Shown here one piece after another: positions 2,540 through 13,865 of a DNA stretch of 64,000 bases. Numbering within the stretch: the first letter of the stretch is position 1; each line of letters begins with the position of its first letter. This DNA comes from Blastocladiella emersonii ATCC 22665 (lineage: Eukaryota; Fungi; Blastocladiomycota): positions 868,001 through 932,000 of the forward strand of contig JANHCV010000009.1 of the NCBI GenBank assembly GCA_025594325.1, in the 5' to 3' direction. Under the pieces are notes generated by a model that made no database searches, was not told the DNA's origin, and saw nothing but the letters and a program-made list of their open reading frames with translations. Made by a program: the position numbers and the translations under genes.

Positions 2540-2803
2540 TCAAATCGAGGGCTAAAGCCCTCTATTTTTGCCTAGCCGACGCGCGCCCTTGGGATCTGAC
2601 GTGTCTCCCTGGCCCACGTGCGTCACGCACGTGTTTCACGCGTTTCACGGGATATAACCAACGCGTCCGAGTCTCCCACCACCAAGCTCTCTCGCCTGCA
2701 GTCAATCGTGATAGTAACAAAAAAAAATCAAGTATTGTGAATGAGAGGACAGCAACAACAAAGGAGGGAAACGGAGGAAGTGGAGAGAGGAACACGACGT
2801 CGT

Positions 2804-3748
2804 TCAGTTAACTGAACGGCGGCCACCGCCACGGCCGCGGCGACGCTTGGGCATCGCCTCGAACTCGTCCTCGTTGCAGCCGCCCTCTTCGGCGGCCATG
2901 GCGGCCGTGCGCTTGGGCGCGTCAGCAGGAACGGCCGTGGCCGACGCGACCTCGCGATCCGTCGTGCCCGCCTCCTCGATGATGGGCGCCGCGAGCGCGA
3001 CTGTCGCACTTGAAGTCGACGACGACAACGACGCGGCCGACGAGCCGACCGGCGGCCCGGCGGGCTGTACGGCGGTCGAGAGCGTCGAGGTCGACAACGA
3101 CGAGGCGACGGTCGCGTCGACCTGCGAAACGGCGGGCTGCACGGCGGTCGAGGACGACGACGACGCGTTGGTGATCTGCGGTGCGGCGGTCTGCACGGCC
3201 GTCGTCGAGGAGGACGACGAGGCGACGCCATCATTGAGCTCGCGCAGGATCCCCGCCATGCGCGTTGTGAACTCCGGGTCCGAGTCGCCCTCCTCGTCGG
3301 ACACGTCAAACACGAACCGCGGCTGGCGCACGGGCGAGGACAGCGTCAGCCCCAACAGCTGCGTGGCTGGGGTCGGCGGGATGCACTCCTGCGGGCGGGC
3401 GCCGTACGGGTTGCTGCGGCCCGCGGGACCGCCGTGATGGTGCGCCGGCGGCGGCAGAGCGGGCGCCGACGACGAGCCCGCGGGACCACCGTGATGGTGA
3501 TGGTGGGCCGGCGGCGAGACGGCAGGCGCAGACAACGAACAGGGGGTCGACGGTGGGTTGAAGGACGAGGCCGTCGACGGCTGCTGCGGCGGGACGGCGA
3601 GCGTCGACGACGAGGCGGGCGCCGACGACGAGGAAGAGGGGGTGGAGGGCGGGTTGAAGTACGAGGCCGGCGGGGGCATGGCGGGCGCCGTGGGCGCCGA
3701 AGGCGGCGGCGCCGGCGTGATGATCTGCTGCTGCTGCTGCGGCTGCAC
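2804..3748 (-). CDS. Low-complexity Pro/Ser/Ala/His-rich ORF inside element A (possible captured terminal exon)
   Basis: 314-codon ORF starting at GTG directly after a possible acceptor (TTCATTGCGCAG|GTG). Internal duplications (FNPPSTP x2, PPAHHH(HH)GGPAG x2) and a basic C-terminal KRRRGRGGGRR. No recognisable domain. Confidence 0.35.
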   Translation of the reverse strand: MQPQQQQQIITPAPPPSAPTAPAMPPPASYFNPPSTPSSSSSAPASSSTLAVPPQQPSTASSFNPPSTPCSLSAPAVSPPAHHHHHGGPAGSSSAPALPPPAHHHGGPAGRSNPYGARPQECIPPTPATQLLGLTLSSPVRQPRFVFDVSDEEGDSDPEFTTRMAGILRELNDGVASSSSSTTAVQTAAPQITNASSSSSTAVQPAVSQVDATVASSLSTSTLSTAVQPAGPPVGSSAASLSSSTSSATVALAAPIIEEAGTTDREVASATAVPADAPKRTAAMAAEEGGCNEDEFEAMPKRRRGRGGGRRSVN

Positions 3749-3780
3749 CTGCGCAATGAAGTCACACGGCGGCCGCCGGG

Positions 3781-6700
3781 ATCTTCTCGCACAAGTTCGC
3801 GCCGCTGCTGCTGTACCAGGCGATGCGGTGGCTCGACCTCGCGGGCGTCGCTGCTGGCGAGGTGACCGAGCAGGATGTCGAGTGCATTGCGAGCACCATC
3901 AGCGTCGACGGCAAGCCGATGCTCAACGTCGCGCTGCACGACTATGTGTTCCGCCCGCCCGAGCTCGAGAACCTGTCGTGGTACGAGTTCATCTCCTCGT
4001 GGTCGCGCGTCAACATGCCGCCGAAAATGCGCGAGGTCCTTGCCAACGGCGGGCGCGTCGTGCCCGTGCAAGCAGAACTCGGACCAGCTGCCGACATGCC
4101 GCCCGGCACGAGGCTGTCCTTCATGGCCGACCACCCGCTGTCCAAGACGCACGAGCTGCGCAAGAACATCGTCGAGGTCGTGCCCAAAATCGCCGGCCCG
4201 CACATGCCCGACCCGCGCAAGTTTTGGGGACGCGCCCGGGTCCGAGGAAAAGTACTCGCGCATGGCGCTGCTGCTGCTCCGCCATTTCCGCGTCTCGAGT
4301 GGCATTCTCGACGAGAACGGCTCGGCGATCGCCAAGTTCAAGGCGTTCAAGGAGGGCCTCCAACCCGGCGACCCTGCGCTCAACCACCTCGAGTACGCCC
4401 AGGCGTACTACTTCAGTCTCGACGGTGCGCGCGCGTACCGTGAGTGCCGCGATCGCGAGAACGCCGAGCTCTCGGCCAGGCTGTCGCAGGAGGAGCGCGG
4501 CGAGCTGTTCGTTCCATCTCGCGACGGCGACCGCAACGCGTCAAGCTCGCGCGCCAAGGCGAGCGCCAACAAGGACCCGACTGCAGAATGGACCATGTTC
4601 ACTCAGTCGCAGCAGGACATTGCACTCGATCCGGTCATTGCCGACAACGCCATGAACGGTGCTGGCGCCGAGGTCGCGCCCACCGTTAGCGAGCAGAACT
4701 TCAAGCTGGTGATCGACGCGCTGGTCCCTGGTGCTGCTGCAGACCTGGTCGACCACCTGCGCCTCCCTCCAGTGCGCCCGTTCGACGTCAAGGCGGCCGT
4801 TCCACCGACGACGCTCAAGGAGCCCATCTCGGCGAACACGCTGAAAAAATTCCTGGCGCAGCACCGCAGCGCCGTATCTGCAGCGCCGGCCGCTGCTGGA
4901 ACCGCTCCTGTCGCTCCGCAAGGCGGGCAGTCGCCGCTCATTGGCGCGTCAACCACGGCAGACGCTGCTGCCGAGTCGCAGATCGGCGTCGATCCCGAAA
5001 ACGTCATTGAGGACGGTCCAGAAGCTCCAGAAGTACCCGCCGACGACGTTTGGCGCGGTACCTTCGCCGCGAGATTAACGGAATCTGCAGCGAAGCGCAA
5101 GCGGTTCCTCGTCATGAAGGCTGCGGACTTGCTCAACAACTTTGACCACGCGACTTGCGGCAAGGAGTGGACGGAGGCGGAGCAGCGCACCAAGCACACG
5201 CCCGCGTACGCGAGCCTCGCGCAGGTTTCGCTCAAGTTCAACCTCAACGAAGAGCAGCACCGCGCGTTCGTGCTCTTCCTCATGACGCTCATCGACACCT
5301 TCATCGGCGGCAACGCGGGTATCGCAGACGCTGCGGCCTCGGCCGAGCAGAACGTGATCCTGTTGGGCCGCGACGACGTCCTACATGTCGTCGGCACCGC
5401 GGCCCTCCCGCCCATGAGCAAGGACCGGACGCCGGTCATCCTCACTGGCTCGGGCGGCACGGGCAAGTCGCGCGTCGTCGATGCGATCCGATACTTTCTC
5501 GCGTCCTGGAACCGGGAAAAGTGCCTCATGGTCATGGCCATGACGGGCATCGCTGCCGCCAACATTGGCGGTACCACCATCCACGCCACGTTCCAGCTCT
5601 CGCTCAAGGGGGAGAGTCTCAGCCCCGACATCAAGCGCATCCGCACCGACTCTGCTGTCGCCAGCGCGTGGCAAGGACGTCACGCCGTGATCATCGACGA
5701 GTTCTCCATGTGCGACGCGCAGGTGCTCGGACGGGTCGACGCGAGCCTTCGCGACCTGCGTCGGTGCGACGAGCCGTTTGGCGGCTGCATCGTCATGCTC
5801 GCCGGCAACCATTTGCAGCTTCCACCAGTGAACGGCACGGCGCTGTTCCAGCTACCCGAGGTGCTCGACGATGCGCCAGACTCGTTCTTCGAGCGGCTGC
5901 TCGCGTACGACACCACGGGCGCGAAAAAAAAGCACTCAGGCCAGCTCGCGTACTGGCGCGCCCGACGTGTCGTTCGACTCGTGCGCAGCAACCGGTTCGT
6001 CAACGACCCATCATGGGGCAGGTGTCTCAACGCGTTCCGCCTCGACAAGGCCCCCGACGAGTTGCGCCGCCTGCTCGACTCGCGCACGACCGCTCGCCTG
6101 CGCCAGCTGAGCGACGACCAAGGCAACAACGAGCTCAAGAAGATCCTCCAGACGCGCGGGCTCACAGTCCTTGCGCCCGACAACTACACGCGTCACACCT
6201 TCAACCTGCTGTACACGCGGCTCGCCGCTGCGGACCCAGAACGCGTCGTGTTTCAGATCAAAGCCAGCATCACGCGCAAGAAGGAGCGAAACGGCGCAAC
6301 CGTCCGCCCCCCGATTGGCGAAAGGGACCTGTTCCGTCTCGCCGAGGAGCCCGACTCGATCACTCGTTTGCCAACCATCCTCGAGGTCTTTGTCGGCATG
6401 GAAGTGCGCGTCAAGGTCAACCAGTGCGTCGAGAAGGGGTGCGCGAATGGCGCTATCGGCGTCGTGCACCACATCGACTGGTTCCCGGGCACGACGTTTA
6501 CTGAGACCGGCTCGCGCATGTACCGCCCATCGCGGGAGCCACATACTGTGTGGATCGACCTGCCCGACGCGCCGCCTGGCCCTCGGTTTTCTGCCATGCC
6601 GGCCGATTGGCCAGACACGGTCATCCCGCTCGCCATGCACTCGGACGACTTTCTCTACAAGGAGGGCGGTATGACGTCGCGCGAGCGAACCGAACCCAAG

Positions 6701-7255
6701 AAACCCGAGTCCAGCGCACTGTGCGCCAAGATGGTCAAGAACTTCGATACTCACGAGCAGTACAAGGACCACGAGAAGGTCAAGATCAAGCAGTTCCCGA
6801 TCGTGCCTGCCTTTGCAATGACGGTGCACGGGGTCCAAGGCGTGACCAAGAACGCCATCATCTTGACGGATCCGTGCCCAGCTGGCTCGTCTGGATCGAT
6901 CAACGGGTCGTCGCTGTACGTTGCGCTCTCGCGGCTCCGCCAGAGCGCGTTTCTGTGGGTCCTCCATCCGATCCCGGACGGCGTGTACGACGTCATGGTC
7001 CCTGATCCGCGGGCCGTGGCCGAAGACTTGCGGCTCCAGGCGCTAGACGTGTTGACTGAGGGCGCGTTCGCTCACGGACAAACCTTTACGCAAACCCACC
7101 CACGAGTCGCAGAGCTCTTCTGTCACGCGATGCAAGAGCATCGCCAGATCAAGAGCGACAAGGAGGAGGAGCAGAAGGCCCGCGACCGAGAGTACTCAAG
7201 GCGGTATCGCGAGCGTAAGCGCGAGCAGAAGCGCGCTCCAGAATTGCATGAGTAG
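3781..7255 (+). pseudogene. Helitron-type PIF1 (SF1B) helicase, 5'-truncated, one frameshift
   Basis: Motifs: Walker A GSGGTGKS, AMTGIAAANIGGTTIH, Walker B IIDEFSM, GNHLQLPPV, QFPIVPAFAMTVHGVQG, YVALSRLR. The upstream linker (FSHKF, DYVFRPPELENLSWYEF, HPLSKTH, PKIAGP) is in frame 3823 and switches +1 to frame 3875 at AAG TTT T GGG GAC (~4222-4225), continuing EEKYSRMALLLLRHFR. Confidence 0.88.
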
Positions 7256-7486
7256 CGGCGGAGCAAGAGGCTTCGCGAGATTTAGTGTAAGATTTCATTT
7301 GTAGTGTTATAAAGTATACTTGGCTGCTTTCAATTACTTTGGTGTGTGATGGGAACAGAGATGCGACTCCATAATGACGCGCGACTGTCAGCGGTACAAA
7401 ACCTCCCGCGTGTGCCGTGCTCCAACGTGGCGGAGGGCTTTAGCCCTCGATTGAAGACCAGACGCGAAGCGTCTAGGTGGTTCAAG

Positions 7487-7498
7487 TAAAATTGACGA
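7487..7498 (+). other. 12-bp remnant of the LRR gene stranded between elements A and B
   Basis: Sequence TAAAATTGACGA. Joining A2539 + 7487-7498 + 13350-13354 gives CGC ATA AAA TTG ACG ATA TAA (R-I-K-L-T-I-stop) in the LRR frame, followed by AT-rich 3'UTR-like sequence. Confidence 0.8.
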
Positions 7499-7880
7499 TC
7501 TAGTCGAGGGCTAAAGCCCTCTTTCTAGACCGGGTCGCTGCCGGATAGGGTGCCGACGCTCACGTGAGCGCCATGCACGTGAGCGACCCGAAAACGCGTG
7601 ACAGACGCGTCGTTTCTCATGTGACTGCTGTGGCGCAACGCGTCCTGGCCTTGCACGTGATCGGCCTCGGCCCAACCCCCGGAAGCGCGTCGCTTGACGC
7701 TGTTCCGCTCGGCCATCGCGGAACGTTTAACGCTTTGCACCGACCCTCGACCAGGCCCGCGAGACTCCGAGCACATGAGAGCGTGAGAGATGCAGAAGCG
7801 CGGTAAGCTGCTAATGGAGCCCGTGCTTGGCGTGCGTGTTGGAAAACGGACATCACCAAACCGCGCTTGCCGAGGCCCCA

Positions 7881-8096
7881 TGGATCCAGGGTGGATCCAC
7901 CTCGAGCCTTCCAGCGCTGGATCCAGCATTAATCTAACGCTGGATCCAGATTTCGCAGACTGGATCCACCATCATGGAAGGTGGAACCAGCCTTGACTGA
8001 GATGAGCTGGAATGACCTTGGCGGCGACCTGGATCGAGACGTTCATCCACTTTCAAAAGTGTGGACCCACACCTTGATCCATACGCCCTGGATCAA
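7881..8096. repeat. Left subterminal cluster of the palindrome TGGATCCA
   Basis: Exact copies at 7881, 7892, 7918, 7941 and 7961, plus several one-mismatch variants to ~8096. Confidence 0.85.
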
Positions 8097-8263
8097 CATG
8101 TTGTAAATGTAGTTCTAGGCGTCGATCTACGTCTATATCCAACTCTTGCTCAGGCAGAACCAGGAACTGATCGACGGTGAACATGGTGGTGAAGGAACTC
8201 GTGCGAAAATGCATCGAAATGGTCGCAACGACCCAGCAAACCATGCGAGGAAGCCGAACGCAA

Positions 8264-8704
8264 CTAGACGTGTTCGTGCTGCTGCAGGATGAGCTCGAGC
8301 CCGTCGCCAAACGTCGTGTTTGCGCCGCCAGGATCACGGCGGTCCACAAAGTCGAGCGAGTTGGCGATCTGCGGCATCATGAGCTGCGTGAGGGTCGCAG
8401 CGTCGTCGTACACGTTGATGAGGTACTCGGTGTACCCGCCCTGGTGCGCCGACGATGGCCGGTTCCCGTTCGGCGCGACGTGAAGGAAGGCCGAGATGGC
8501 CGACAGCGGCACGATGTGGAACTCGCACGTGGCGGGTTGCGTGGGACGGAGAGCAACCGTCTGCCCGGCGTTAAGGCCTGGCGGAACGACGTGCGGCACC
8601 GACTGGTAGAGGTGGAACCGCTCGACGAGCGTGATCTCAAGTTCAATGTCGTCCAACTTCAGGTCAGAGGGCCAGGTGCGCGGATACCGCTTGGCGACGC
8701 GCAT
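8264..8704 (-). pseudogene. Fragment resembling the C-terminal domain of fungal Plavaka/CMC-type transposon proteins
   Basis: Pattern TLVERFHLY...PGL...FHIVPLSAISAFLHVAP...YLINVYDD recalls the AYVEWF...IIPL..I...HLIP...YVN.F.D pattern remembered for that family. No catalytic core seen. Recognition by eye only. Confidence 0.45.
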
Positions 8705-9188
8705 CCGAGGCCATCAGCAAGCTCGAAGTCTTAACTGAGACTCATAAAGCTTCAAGATGCGAGAGCTCTCACGACCGCCGTTACGACTCTTCACGCGAGG
8801 GAACGCTGCGGCGCGGCTTGCTCGCCGACCAGGTCCGTCTCGGTCCACTTCCAAAGCTCACGGCACGGCCACACGCTTGCAGCGAGTGATTCATGGATCA
8901 TTCATAGAGTGCGACGTCGCGGTACCGTCGCCGGGAGAAGAGAGCGCGGCGCTGCAGCGAAGCGCGAGCCGCAAAACGCGTCGAAGCCAACGTCACGTGA
9001 GCGCGTCGATCGTTTCAGCCGCGTTCGCTTTTCGCGGACTTCGCGCCGCGGCGGCTCGCACTCTCCCGCCCCACCACCAACAGCGCATCCGCCCAGCGCC
9101 GCCACGCGTCCGCGGCACGGTGACCCCACGGTACGCGTCTCTCCCCTTCTCCGAGGTCTCTCGCTCCTCGCGACGTGCATCCACAGCC

Positions 9189-11088
9189 ATGCCTCGAGAC
9201 CCGCGATACGCCCTGCACGCTTCGGCGGGTCTTGCGCCTGCTGCGCTTGATGCTCGCGCCGCGTTCCCACGCCCTCCGCGCCGGCTGTCCGTTCGCTCGC
9301 TGACGCGTCACACGGTCACCTTGCTTTCTTTCGTAGCCTTCGAGATGTACATCAAGCTGCAGCGGCGCTCGTGGGGGCCGTCGTGACGCACCCGCGTCGA
9401 TCTTGACCATGGTCGCGACTAGGTGCGCCGTGTGCGGCTCGGTCTCCTGCTCCCACGGGCCGAGACTCACATGTTCGCGAACTCCATCGGTAGGGCGCCA
9501 AGTACGCCAAGCGGCTACGACAAGCGCCGCGCCTTCGCCCGCCAGGCCAACTCGTGTGCGACGCGCTCAAGGCTACACGGTACGGGCCTTCTCCTTCGCG
9601 TTCTCGGCGTGATTCGCGCTGATCGTGGGCACGGACAGGCTCCGAGCTCCCGAGCGACATCGCTCGTGTCGTCGGCCCAGATCCTGGCGACGCGGCCCGT
9701 CCGTTCGCGCCATGTGTATACTTCGCCCGATCCCTTGCTCACTTGTCTCCGCCACGTCACCCATAGCCTCGGTCAACCACGACAAGCCTCAACGGTGCTC
9801 CAGAACACGCGGCGAGGTCTCGCTGCTCGGGTCGTCGCTGGCCTCAAGCACGCGCCTGGCTGCACGTGCGAGTCCGAGTTCGAGGTACGTGACTCGGTCA
9901 ACACGCGCCCATGGACCGAAGCTGACACGGCCGATTTGAGTAGTTCATCCAGTACGTCAAGCTGCAGCGGCAAGGGTCGCCTCGTCGTCCGCCCTTGTGG
10001 CGCGCGCGAGGTCGTGCGGCGTCGATCTCATACACCCGCATCAAGGACTGGAACCTCAAGTACAAGCTCGGCATCAAGGATATCGAGGCGTTTGACAAGG
10101 AGGTACGCGGACGCGGTGTGGGTCGCCGCGGTGGCAGGTGCTGATGCCGCTTCTGTGTAGGTCACCAAGGCCCTGCAGACGATCCGCAAGCCGTTCAAGG
10201 AGAACTCGAAGTGGGTCGACCTCGTGCAGGCGGCCGCCGACAACTCGTGCATCATCACCAACAAGGTCGGCGAAAAGAAGTCGCTCACCAAGCAGTGGCT
10301 GGTCGGCGAGGCGCCCGAGGAGCTCCACCGCGCCACGCTGGCCATGGTCGACGAGTACGACGACGCCGAGCTCGACATGGATTTCGCCGACACCGACCTC
10401 GATGCGGGGATGTCGGTCCGCGCGTGCCGTGGTGCTCACCCGCTGTACGTGTCCTTCCTCGACCGACTTCTCTTTGGGCAGGCGAACGACATGGCCAACG
10501 CTCGAGGCTCGAACCAGTCGTCGCACGGTACGGCTTTGCTCACCAAGTCGCACTCAATCCCGTCGCTCACGTTCCGCACTGTAGCCAAGCGCATGGCCGG
10601 CTACGCGATTGTCAGCGACCTCAAGCTGCTCGACATCAACAAGCCCCTCCCGATCGACGGGTCAAGTCCGGTGTGGCGCATCATGGCCGCGGTCGCTGTC
10701 CTTGTACGTTTTGCTCTTGCAATCTGCCGGGTTCCTCCGTTCGCCTTCGCCCTCTCTGACTTCACCGCGATGCACGCTCGCCGCTTTCTAGTGCGCATGG
10801 CGCATCACTGGGAGCGCGTACCGACAAGATATCATCGTCGGCCTGACCAAGGAGGACGCCAAGGTGACGCTCGCCGACTACTACGACGCCTTCCTCGTCT
10901 CGAGCACGGGTTCGGTTTCCGTCGCCAAGCGCATCTACCTGGCCTCGCAGCTCCGCTCGCTGTTCAAGCGTGGGATCCTCAACGTCAGCCTCGCCGAGAT
11001 CGCCCAGCAGAACACGGGCGTCGAGACGACCAAGACCCAGGCGGCTATGACCGTCGACATTGCAAACGACATCTGCCCCGACGAGTAG
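9189..11088 (+). pseudogene. Multi-intron gene of unknown function inside the nested element, probably decayed
   Basis: A series of short GT(ACG/GCG)...AG introns separates coding-like exons (FEMYIKLQRR, FIQYVKLQRQG, RIKDWNLKYKLGIKDIEAFDKE, VTKALQTIRKPFKENSKW, TLADYYDAFLVSS...ICPDE-stop). Apparent frameshift near 9370-9376. Confidence 0.5.
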
Positions 11089-11245
11089 CTGCGCCATACC
11101 ACATCTCGGGTGGCGGGATGTGCAGCGGGCGGTGCTCAAGGGCAGGTTCCCTTCCTTCATCTCGACCTCTCTGCCCTCTCCATGGTCATCGTTGTGGGGC
11201 GTACGCGTGTGTATATATTGAACCGTTCGACCCTTGATTTGCTCG

Positions 11246-11590
11246 TGGATCTCGAGTGCGCGTGCGTGGATTGCGACGTGGATCAGCGCCTCGACTCAGG
11301 CTATAACCAAATGGATCCACGCCAAGGTCGAGTTGATCGTCAAACTGATCGACGCAAGGATCCATGTTTATCGTGGCCTAGTTCCGTGCCTGGATTGCTA
11401 TATTACTTTTCTGGATCAAGCGTGGATCAAGCTTGGGCGAGCTGGATCCACCCGCAAACCGTGCGGACCTCTTAGATGGATCCAGCTTTTGGTCAAGGTG
11501 GATCGCGAGCTGGATCCAGGAAAGTAATATAGCAATCCACATTCCCCCGAGGTCCATCCAGTCCACGGCTGGATCCAGGGCGGATCCACT
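11246..11590. repeat. Right subterminal cluster of TGGATCCA with an internal 26-bp inverted repeat
   Basis: Exact copies at 11312, 11443, 11477, 11511 and 11570, plus variants. 11392-11417 is inverted at 11513-11538 (25/26 match). Confidence 0.85.
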
Positions 11591-11896
11591 TCAAATTGCT
11601 GGGGCACGGTTTGGTGATGGAGCCCGTGTTCAGTGCACATCCTTAAACGACGCGGTTCACCTGGGAGTCGCTAGCGCAGGCTCGTTGAAGTGGGCGCGAG
11701 TTCAACGGTTGCACCGAGAACGACTTGCGAGGTCCCATGAACGTGAGTTCGAGTGAGGACTGCGAGGTCGAGAGATCCGCTCTTTGAGTTGCGGTCCGTT
11801 ACACGGACGGGTCGCTCCGTGGCTTGGGTTTGCCAGACGTTGCAGCGGGCGCAGACGTCTTCGTGAGCGGATCGCTGGAACTCGCTGTTCGCGTGG

Positions 11897-12640
11897 GTGC
11901 GGGTCCGCGCAACGTGCTCGTTCGAGTGGGCCGTGCTCCGCTGGATCATCGCGGCCCGCGAGCTCCAGGTCGAGTGGGTCCGTGGCCACGCCGTCAACTT
12001 GGAGAATGAGGAGGCCGACGCGCTCGCCAACAAGGGCTGCCGCGCAACTCCCGTTGTGAATCGCCGCCGCCGTCCGCGCGGACCTCGATGCGCCCTTCAC
12101 GGCGCGCAGGCGCGGCTGCGACTTCAACTCAGTCCCGCGACGCGCTCTCCGCCGCCTGCACGACGCGCGACACGACCCGCTGCTCGCTCTGACCGCGTCC
12201 GCTGGCATCACGTCCTCCCCCATCGATGTCCCTGCCCTTGTCACTGCGCTTCGGGGCAGCACGCGCCGCATCCACCCGAGCGAGTCCCTCACCGCGAACT
12301 CGCTCCCGTGCTTCCAGCTCCGCGCGCTCGCAGGCCAGCTGCCGACCCGCAGCTGTTTGCACCAGCTCTGGCCGCACCGCTACGAGTCCCCCAACTGCGC
12401 CGAATGCCCAAAAACTGGCGGCAAGGTCGCCGACACTCAAGCGTACGCGTTTGAGTGCACACTCTTCGCGCTCAATCGTCTCCGCGGCACTGGACGACGT
12501 CCGCATCGTAAACGCCCTCGCGGCGGTCGACAAGGGCTAGATCGGGGGCGGGCTCCGCACCAGCGTCACCGGATCGCTCGCCGAGCGCCTTCTCAACCCA
12601 AAACACATGAAGCACCGTGGCCGCCATCGTGGACGCACCA
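11897..12640 (+). mobile_element. Non-LTR retrotransposon (LINE) relic: RNase H C-terminus plus C-terminal Cys knuckle
   Basis: WAVLRWIIAARELQVEWVRGHAVNLENEEADALANKG matches the RNase HI WVKGH...NE.AD.LA..G motif. Downstream, in another frame, LHQLWPHRYESPNCAECP...DTQAYAFEC resembles the LINE C-terminal zinc-binding motif. Multiple frameshifts. Confidence 0.7.
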
Positions 12641-12872
12641 CTCGTCGCGTGGTTCAAACAGCTTTACTGAGACGAACTCATCGATCCACGCCTCGCGCTC
12701 CTGCCGCGACGGCCATCGCCTCGAGCGCCATGCAGGAGCTTGCTTGGCGCCCTCGCTGCAGCGCGATTGCTGATGCCGCGCCGGTGACACATGACGGTGC
12801 CCTGCCGCCACTCAACGCGAGCGACCAACCGCACCATCCTTTGTTGAAGCGCGCGCATCGCGCAGCAGGGGA

Positions 12873-13256
12873 ACGCGCTGTGCTGTGACGCGCTGTGCTG
12901 TGACGCGCTGTGCTGTGACGCGCTGTGCTGTGACGCGCTGTGCTGTGACGCGCAAAGCTGCGACGCGCAAAGCTGCGACGCGCAAAGCTGCGACGCGCAA
13001 AGCTGCGACGCGCAAAGCTGCGACGCGCAAAGCTGCGACGCGCAAAGCTGCGACGCGCAAAGCTGCCACGCGCAAAGCTGCGACGCGCAAAGCTGCGACG
13101 CGCAAAGCTGCGACGCGCAAAGCTGCGACGCGCAAAGCTGCCACGCGCAAAGCTGCCACGCGCGAAGCTGCCACGCGCGAAGCTGCCACGCGCGAAGCTG
13201 CCACGCGCGAAGCTGCCACGCGCGAAGCTGCCACGCGCGAAGCTGCCACGCGCAAA
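12873..13256. repeat. 15-bp minisatellite, 25 units plus a partial unit
   Basis: 5x ACGCGCTGTGCTGTG, then 14x ACGCGCAAAGCTGC(G/C), then 6x ACGCGCGAAGCTGCC. Ends ~40 bp before the 3' inverted repeat of element B. Confidence 0.97.
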
Positions 13257-13865
13257 ACGGCGCAAGCGCAAAACGGCGCAAGCGCCCAACGTGGCGCGGG
13301 CTTTAGCCCTCGATTGAAAACCAGACGCGAAGCGTCTAGGTGCCTCAAGTATAATGTGTTAGATTGGTTCGGTAGTTTTCGATACATTCATTTACTTGTG
13401 TGTTCCCCTGCTTGAGACTTGGGATGAACGAACGACCGAAACGCGTCCAGACGCGTCGCTTCGGTGTGGCGCAGCGCGTCTCAGATGATCATGTGACCGT
13501 GCTCGAACTTCAAATCATCGGCCACAACTAGTCAGCGAAGGGTTTTGCGACTTTTCACTTGGCGCAATAGGTTTGATGGGCAACAAACTTTCGAAGTCGA
13601 GGCGTCGGGGCGACCAGCGGTCGACTTTGTTGATCAACGGGTTTGTTTGTCAACCTACAGCGTCCGCACAGCTGGCGCCGCGGCGTGTGTGCCACCCACC
13701 GTCTATCCATGCTACCGTCGCAATTTCGCTCGGCTCGTCGCTCATCGCAACCACAGCGACGATCGTTGTTCGTGCTTAGTCCGCGGTGAGTGGTCGACCA
13801 TGCTCAAGGACTTCCCACAAGTATCATCACCACGATGCAAGAACAGCTAGTTACTGTATCAATAC

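Follow-up and report, generated by a model that had tools for sequence, protein, structure and literature searches.

In Helitron2 elements, as defined by Bao and Jurka (2013, PMC3627910), each end bears a hairpin, a 5′ repeat lies 0–2 bp from the end, and the 3′ hairpin is immediately preceded by a subterminal 3′ repeat. Helentrons and HINEs carry palindromic subterminal repeats 2–4 nt from the 5′ end and 38–60 nt from the 3′ end, together with a 3′ palindrome (Thomas et al. 2014, PMC4067079). In Fusarium, FoHeli1/2 begin with 'TCAG...' and a hairpin, and their repeat is found in a hairpin 38–51 bp before the 3′ end, ATATTTT (Chellapan et al. 2016, PMC5148889). Neighbouring FoHeli1/2 copies can be separated by 2 bp, and PCR products in which the two ends are joined point to a circular intermediate (PMC5148889). 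At the protein level DUF6570 is, according to HELIANO, specific to the HLE2 clade (PMC11417382).

Here we analyse a 64,000-nt stretch of the genome of Blastocladiella emersonii ATCC 22665 (contig JANHCV010000009.1, positions 868,001 to 932,000; hereafter the window, to which all positions refer unless a locus is named). A preliminary description of positions 7422–7521 had read them as the terminus of a hybrid Helitron, combining the TC start and A^T target of canonical Helitrons with asymmetric inverted repeats and a CAAG end, and possibly representing an undescribed intermediate lineage. As first claimed, this would have been a missing link between two Helitron groups, and the evidence given below removes that claim. 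What that evidence does support is the more general part of the description, namely a Helitron-like rolling-circle element with a 5′ hairpin and an asymmetric subterminal inverse copy of it. In our judgement it is highly probable that the locus holds two non-autonomous copies of one Helitron2/HLE2-type rolling-circle family of B. emersonii, the two following one another head to tail across an 11-nt gap, where the stop codon of an LRR gene lies. A full-text literature search found no paper describing Helitrons in B. emersonii. Judged by the searched literature the family is new for this fungus, yet of a known kind, and it is probably absent from curated collections. With its termini now fixed precisely, this abundant family of Helitron2 type, from an early-diverging fungus, allows clean annotation of the Helitrons of this genome.

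Layout and termini of the two elements

The interval 7422–7521 is the final 71 nt of a first element (E1), an 11-nt host spacer and the opening 18 nt of a second (E2). Read in order it consists of CCAACGTGGCG-GAGGGCTTTAGCCCTC-GA, a stem-loop and GTAAAAT, followed by TGACGATCTAG and then TCGAGGGCTAAAGCCCTC. End alignments place E1, a Rep-less, helicase-bearing Helitron2-type element of 4948 bp, at 2545–7492 on the plus strand, and the copy at locus L001 matches window 2545–7493 at 93%. The spacer TGACGATCTAG occupies 7493–7503, as defined by the flank positions in the end alignments. E2 (7504–13355, plus strand, 5852 bp) is a short non-coding member of the family, in which no transposase was found, and which is collinear with L009:4950–6758 except for a nested insert. 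All that E1 and E2 have in common is their terminal stretches, of ∼25 nt (5′) and 71 nt (3′). The insert in E2 is an unrelated TIR transposon of 3.77 kb (7851–11618; ends CATCACCAAACCG... and ...CGGTTTGGTGATG); a 2-bp duplication of GA is apparent. Its nesting is proven by the paralogous copy in L009, which is uninterrupted (empty site near 5303), and once it is subtracted the length of E2 is ∼2.08 kb. E2 also carries a 15-bp minisatellite (12798–13290) of more than 20 units; since the L009 paralogue has about four (L009:6558–6623), the array expanded after insertion.

Further copies came from an exhaustive protein search with the E1 helicase, which returned fragments at 50–93% identity, recorded at NCBI as hypothetical proteins of B. 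emersonii ATCC 22665 (GCA_025594325.1). The loci of these fragments make up ten distinct regions with further copies. From the window and the assembly of this strain we were able to align 12 5′ ends and 14 3′ ends, and it is on these alignments that the boundaries given here are based.

Among the 12 5′ ends, conservation begins at the T of TCGAGGG (window 2545 and 7504), with no conserved column earlier, and the family starts with TCGAGGGCTAAAGCCCTC. TCGAGGG opens ten of the 12, the variants being TCAAGGG and TTGAGGG. The six bases upstream are, copy by copy, ATCAAA, ATCTAG, TACTTG, GCCAAG, TCTTTA, GACCAT, AGTGAG, GAAGAA, GCTTCA, CTTGAG, TTGTTA and GTATAA. The start proposed previously, TC(A/T)A(A/G), thus lay 5 nt too far out: its pentamers, TCAAA and TCTAG, are host flank. 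Corrected, the 5′ tip is TC followed by a 16-nt perfect palindrome (repeat 16–18 nt), and in all 12 copies there are 2 nt between the 5′ terminus and the start of the repeat GAGGGCTAAAGCCCTC. Motif search, folding and the 12-copy alignment agree on the tips of E1 (2545–2562) and E2 (7504–7521), both on the plus strand. The 5′ hairpin reported earlier, GAGGGCT-AA-AGCCCTC, is real. The window contains four occurrences of the 18-mer TCGAGGGCTAAAGCCCTC, at 2545 (+), 7504 (+), 7433 (–) and 13296 (–, one mismatch), where chance predicts none, and as single-stranded DNA it is predicted to fold into a hairpin with a GAGGGC/GCCCTC stem at each left end. Outer pairings of AAAT with ATTT in E1 and of TCTAG with CTAGA in E2 were considered as covariation reaching the TC of the preliminary description, and were rejected because the bases concerned are flank in the further copies.

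The 14 3′ ends remain conserved as far as ...TC[A/G]AG[T/G]A[A/T]AAT (window 7492 and 13355), with no conservation beyond. All 14 copies terminate in ...AG[T/G]A[A/T]AAT, that is TCAAGTAWAAT, and not in CTRR. The CAAG formerly taken for the end stops at 7486 and 13349, six bases inside the element, while conservation continues to GTAWAAT, so that this boundary was misplaced by 6 nt. Public contigs of other copies likewise stay aligned to 7492/7493 before they diverge, and do not part at 7486. The other copies therefore end at positions different from those first proposed for the family.

Inside this terminus lie an inverse copy of the 5′ repeat and a second hairpin. In E1 the inverse repeat, GAGGGCT-TT-AGCCCTC-GA, occupies 7433–7450 (+) and stops 42 nt short of the 3′ end; in E2 its counterpart GCGGGCTTTAGCCCTCGA, with one stem mismatch, occupies 13296–13313 (+). 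The earlier report of such a copy stands for both elements, and it is the distance that changes: once the end is corrected, the inverted copy of the opening 18 nt spans 42–59 nt from the 3′ terminus. An inverse repeat of 18–20 nt is present in every copy. The stems of the 5′ and 3′ hairpins are identical, and the loop alone differs (AA versus TT). The second hairpin, CAGACGC-GAA-GCGTCTG with an outer TTGAA/TTCAA stem, was also correctly recognised at the outset, and its core occurs twice in the window, at 7458 and 13321. Within E1 it forms the stem-loop TTGAA..ACC-AGACGC-GAA-GCGTCT-GGT..TTCAA (7451–7485, +), followed by the tail GTAAAAT (7486–7492, +), which the 14-copy alignment and the loose contig ends at 7492/7493 identify as the true 3′ terminus. 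The stem-loop and tail of E2, ...CCTCAAGTATAAT, lie at 13314–13355 (+), as judged from folding and the same alignment. The right ends of E1 and E2 are each predicted to fold as a GAGGGC/GCCCTC hairpin plus a longer stem-loop, with z = –4.2 for 7422–7493.

Both the inverse repeat and the 3′ stem-loop are conserved in 14 of 14 copies. The stem-loop has up to 14 pairs and ends 7 nt from the terminus, leaving the 7-nt A/T tail GTAWAAT. In 11 copies 95.5% of its cells are paired, and three related copies among these share one compensatory pair, G-C to A-T. The pairing evidence is modest but consistent, and indicates that the structure matters. Two arrangements of 3′ ends in other copies may be recorded here. 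At L003:11406–11751 an insertion of ∼340 bp lies in the loop of another copy's 3′ subterminal palindrome, with CTTCAG on both sides, and at L008:13239–13584 two family 3′ ends stand tail to tail, 204 bp apart (ends 13309 and 13514).

Read depth from four sequencing runs, all of one sample, gives a measure of abundance. In run X1 depth is 36 in the host flank, 150–1270 within the element and 2572 over the termini, and run X2 gives the same ratio, with 146 in the flank versus 11006 over the termini. Given that terminal depth is ∼70 times flank depth, the termini should be present roughly 70 times per genome. Neither an empty site nor a circle junction was found in the four runs. In contigs of three of the four, position 7486 abuts 7625, and the shorter side of the join has 21 letters. 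The join may come from a rearranged copy elsewhere in the genome, and we do not take it as support for a CAAG end, since the 14 genomic copies contradict such an end.

Set against the described systems, the family matches the Helitron2 descriptions feature by feature, in its 5′ tip repeat, subterminal inverse copy, 3′ stem-loop and lack of a target-site duplication (TSD). Its architecture is that of Helitron2/HLE2, and is nearly point for point that of FoHeli1/2 of Fusarium oxysporum, a member of the Helitron2 group. Both start with TC and a short hairpin, both carry an inverted repeat in a hairpin close to the 3′ end (38–51 bp there, 42 nt here), and both have a second 3′ hairpin and close with A/T-rich sequence whose last base is T (ATATTTT in FoHeli, GTAWAAT in the present family). 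The two also lack a TSD, measure ∼5–6 kb and include copies inserted a few bp apart. The terminal sequences are nevertheless unrelated, FoHeli inserts after TNAT whereas the flank here is W-R, the FoHeli elements encode a complete RepHel whereas no copy here has Rep, and the hosts are an ascomycete and a blastoclad.

The other comparisons are looser. Like the family described here, the Helentrons and HINEs of mite and Culex have palindromic subTIRs (12–15 bp) and a 3′ palindrome 8–35 bp from the end, and in some copies there are microsatellites or repeats in tandem, as E2 contains its minisatellite (PMC4067079). Helentrons differ in their TT insertion, in runs of T at both boundaries and in an AP-endonuclease within the transposase, neither such a domain nor a TT rule being seen here. 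The Helitron2 elements of Chlamydomonas and others (PMC3627910) share the end hairpins, the 5′ repeat 0–2 bp in, the 3′ repeat upstream of a hairpin and the 5′ T; their 3′ repeat, however, lies ∼20–30 bp from the end rather than 42 nt, and measures 8–15 bp rather than the 16–18 nt, fully palindromic, found here. Finally, HLE1 elements such as Helraiser (PDB 7LCC) resemble the family in that they begin with TC, form a 3′ hairpin within a few nt of the terminus, lack a TSD and carry a PIF1-type helicase downstream of Rep, the latter missing here. Of the four marks of HLE1 the family has the 5′ TC, but departs in the other three, which are the CTRR end, the A^T insertion and the absence of inverted repeats.

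Flanks, head-to-tail pairs and the LRR gene

We looked for a target rule in the bases that flank the corrected ends. The base at –1 is A in six copies, G in five and T in one, hence a purine in 11 of 12 (p = 0.003); position –2 holds A or T in 11 copies out of 12 (p = 5e-5); and the base at +1 is T in 6 of 14. With A at –1 in only 6/12 and T at +1 in only 6/14, there is no A^T rule, and the left flank is merely A/T-rich and purine-ended. The A^T target of the preliminary description arose because the two copies compared share ATC upstream, and because the element's own TAWAAT tail was taken for flank. A comparison of two copies can thus set Helitron ends several bases off and give rise to spurious target rules. 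Nor did we find a TSD, there being no duplicated bases shared by the flanks of the 12 5′ ends and 14 3′ ends.

The 5′ flank is a purine in 11/12, so the T^T target usual for HLE2 is not evident. The first and last bases of the element are both T, and the target could nonetheless be a T^T of which both Ts have been counted as element. Given that the element starts and ends with T, and that no empty site for this Helitron family was found, the terminal T at either junction could be a target base. Either assignment is compatible with the L009 junction TATAA-T-TGAGGG, where two copies meet directly head to tail.

Three of the 12 5′ ends sit 0, 6 or 11 nt behind the 3′ end of another copy in the same orientation (L009:4950, L011:11871–11876 and window 7493–7503, respectively). 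These pairs join different subfamilies, and their spacers are none (0 nt), TTGTTA (6 nt) and TGACGATCTAG (11 nt). The arrangement suggests that new copies home in on the 3′ ends of resident ones, or on the A/T tail there.

The position of E1 relative to the host gene is exact. The frame of the LRR gene (1702–2544) has AAA at 2542–2544 as its last sense codon, and by frame arithmetic from the ORF beginning at 1702 the first host bases past E1 (7493–7495, in the spacer) are TGA, which would end that frame. Given the corrected ends, E1 therefore starts precisely where the LRR gene's last sense codon stops, and is followed at once by a TGA stop supplied by the spacer. The sequence before insertion is predicted to have been ...CGCATCAAA-TGACGATCTAG-GTGTTAG..., plus or minus one T at each junction. 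In its present form the LRR ORF runs 89 codons into the transposon.

Coding region and the absence of Rep

The coding region of E1 is a truncated RepHel gene (3787–7255, plus strand), recognised by Pfam and tblastn, and made up of a post-Rep linker and a PIF1-family helicase. The helicase lies in an ORF of 1126 codons (3875–7255; Pfam E = 5e-26). The linker, of RepHel type, is in another frame (3787–4224), the change of frame falling near 4215–4232. When DUF6570-Rep-PIF1 proteins are compared with the locus by tblastn, the alignment starts only at their post-Rep region; what E1 carries is thus collinear with a Helitron RepHel from the post-Rep linker through the helicase, and is not a helicase core alone. 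An AP-endonuclease domain is absent, since Pfam gives only PIF1/AAA families in the 1126-aa ORF, which reaches its stop codon.

We searched for the missing nuclease in several ways. Neither Rep/HUH nor DUF6570 was detected by a Rep/DUF6570 profile in six-frame translations of the window and all loci. Pfam found no Rep in any of the larger ORFs of E1 and E2, and none was found by tblastn of six DUF6570-Rep-PIF1 proteins against the window and the 10 loci. A search of the protein database with the Rep piece and the Rep profile yielded no Rep protein of B. emersonii, only oomycete and metagenomic proteins. With Rep absent from every copy examined, we regard the copies as non-autonomous. An antisense ORF of 249 codons was considered as a split-off Rep and rejected, being of low complexity, with no HUH motif and no Pfam match. 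This ORF is carried by one subfamily and recurs nearly identically on the minus strand at L008:9021–9770 and L009:662–1411, placed inside the 5′ end and ahead of the helicase gene.

By protein comparison the helicase is nearest to proteins with the HLE2 marker. The full-length helicase relatives scanned with an intact N-terminus, P0088, P0091, P0106, P0098, P0114, P0120 and P0145, all combine DUF6570, Helitron_like_N and PIF1, and in the top 150 hits the majority of the long ones align to the DUF6570-Rep profile from its first positions. The E1 helicase scores 52 bits against Helraiser (HLE1, 7LCC) and 128–133 bits against HLE2-type proteins, these being pairwise scores.

The Rep-less set comprises the window and, in the public assembly, 11 copies or fragments spread over nine contigs; at least three helicase subfamilies are represented, with dS up to ∼0.6. 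The Rep-less copies that bear a helicase are window 3787–7255 and those at L001, L003, L005, L006 and L008–L012. The helicase genes of the E1 type and of the L008/L009 type start at the same post-Rep position, which corresponds to residue 1039 of P0106; this comparison covers just the two subfamilies with a readable N-terminus, which are separated by a dS of ∼0.6. In the helicase frame dN/dS is 0.41–0.50, versus 0.8–1.5 in two out-of-frame controls, and the contrast persists among Rep-less copies that are 93% identical. Judged from these sequence comparisons, there are hints that a Rep-less, helicase-bearing master may have stayed under selection.

One could go further and propose that the family is a long-lived 'helicase-only' Helitron lineage, a tentative reading that we consider possible but improbable. 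Were it true, a Rep-less element would have kept a functional helicase under selection during amplification, and possession of its own helicase might favour mobilisation by Rep from elsewhere. It would be a lineage that also seems to aim its insertions 0–11 nt behind resident 3′ ends. Both the Rep-less copies with their constrained helicase and the repeated insertion behind resident 3′ ends are worth following.

Mobilisation and alternative readings

How such copies might move can be proposed by analogy with Helraiser biochemistry and with the Helitron2 model of Bao and Jurka. We suppose mobilisation in trans, given that no Rep-bearing copy with these termini was found. A RepHel so supplied would nick the top strand immediately before the T that opens TCGAGGG, and its helicase would peel the strand off 5′ to 3′. 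The same hairpin stem at both ends would mark the element. The second 3′ hairpin, perhaps together with pairing of the 5′ and 3′ repeats, would direct the Rep cut 7 nt downstream and so act as terminator. Once circularised, the single strand would enter A/T-rich DNA following a purine, in many cases immediately past the 3′ end of a copy already in place.

The reading from which this analysis started, that of a hybrid or intermediate lineage in which the TC start, A^T target and CTRR-like CAAG end of canonical Helitrons occur with Helitron2-type asymmetric repeats, is in our view very unlikely. It is easy to see how it arose: both copies in the window have A^TC upstream and CAAG^TA downstream, the element does begin with TC, and A precedes it in 6/12 copies. 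An A-T-inserting 'proto-Helentron' intermediate has moreover been proposed in Phytophthora (PMC4067079), and the nearest named relatives of the helicase outside Blastocladiella are oomycete. With 12 and 14 copies aligned, however, the boundaries shift by 5 nt and 6 nt, the base at –1 is G or T in 6/12, the base at +1 is not T in 8/14, and the 3′ end is ...GTAWAAT instead of CAAG or CTRR. A start of TC and a hairpin is already known in Helitron2, in FoHeli1/2 (PMC5148889), and the proto-Helentron, when re-examined by HELIANO, was found to have HLE2 repeats. Even less credit is due to a DNA transposon of cut-and-paste or fold-back type, with inverted repeats in subterminal position and a captured fragment of a PIF1 helicase, which we think hardly plausible. 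Such a transposon would account for the lack of Rep/HUH in any copy and for the presence of inverted repeats. It is contradicted by the lack of a TSD in 12 insertions, by the asymmetry of the ends (the repeat is terminal at 5′ and 42 nt internal at 3′, and only the 3′ end has an extra stem-loop), by a coding region that is collinear with RepHel from the post-Rep linker through the helicase, and by an architecture identical to that of verified Helitron2 families.

A third alternative bears only on the origin of the pair and not on the identity of the elements. E1 and E2, like the pairs in L009 and L011, might be composite units rather than independent insertions, produced by end-bypass in which the transposase ran past one 3′ end and halted at the following one, and their junction would then be internal to a single longer mobile unit. 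End-bypass is established for Helitrons according to work cited in PMC5148889, and the frequency with which a 5′ end follows a 3′ end (3/12, at 0, 6 or 11 nt and in the same orientation) speaks for it. We nevertheless hold it to be unlikely. The three spacers differ (none, TTGTTA and TGACGATCTAG), as do the partner subfamilies, so that the loci seen include no composite that was itself copied; in addition, the spacer in the window carries the host LRR frame on to a stop codon. We therefore retain two neighbouring insertions of a Helitron2/HLE2-type family as the preferred reading of the locus.

As to the affinity of the helicase, its closest named relatives outside Blastocladiella are oomycete proteins, from Nothophytophthora (41% identity) and then from Aphanomyces, together with relatives of Phytophthora proteins (P0080, P0085 and P0091). 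This oomycete affinity is either a sampling effect or the result of an old horizontal transfer.
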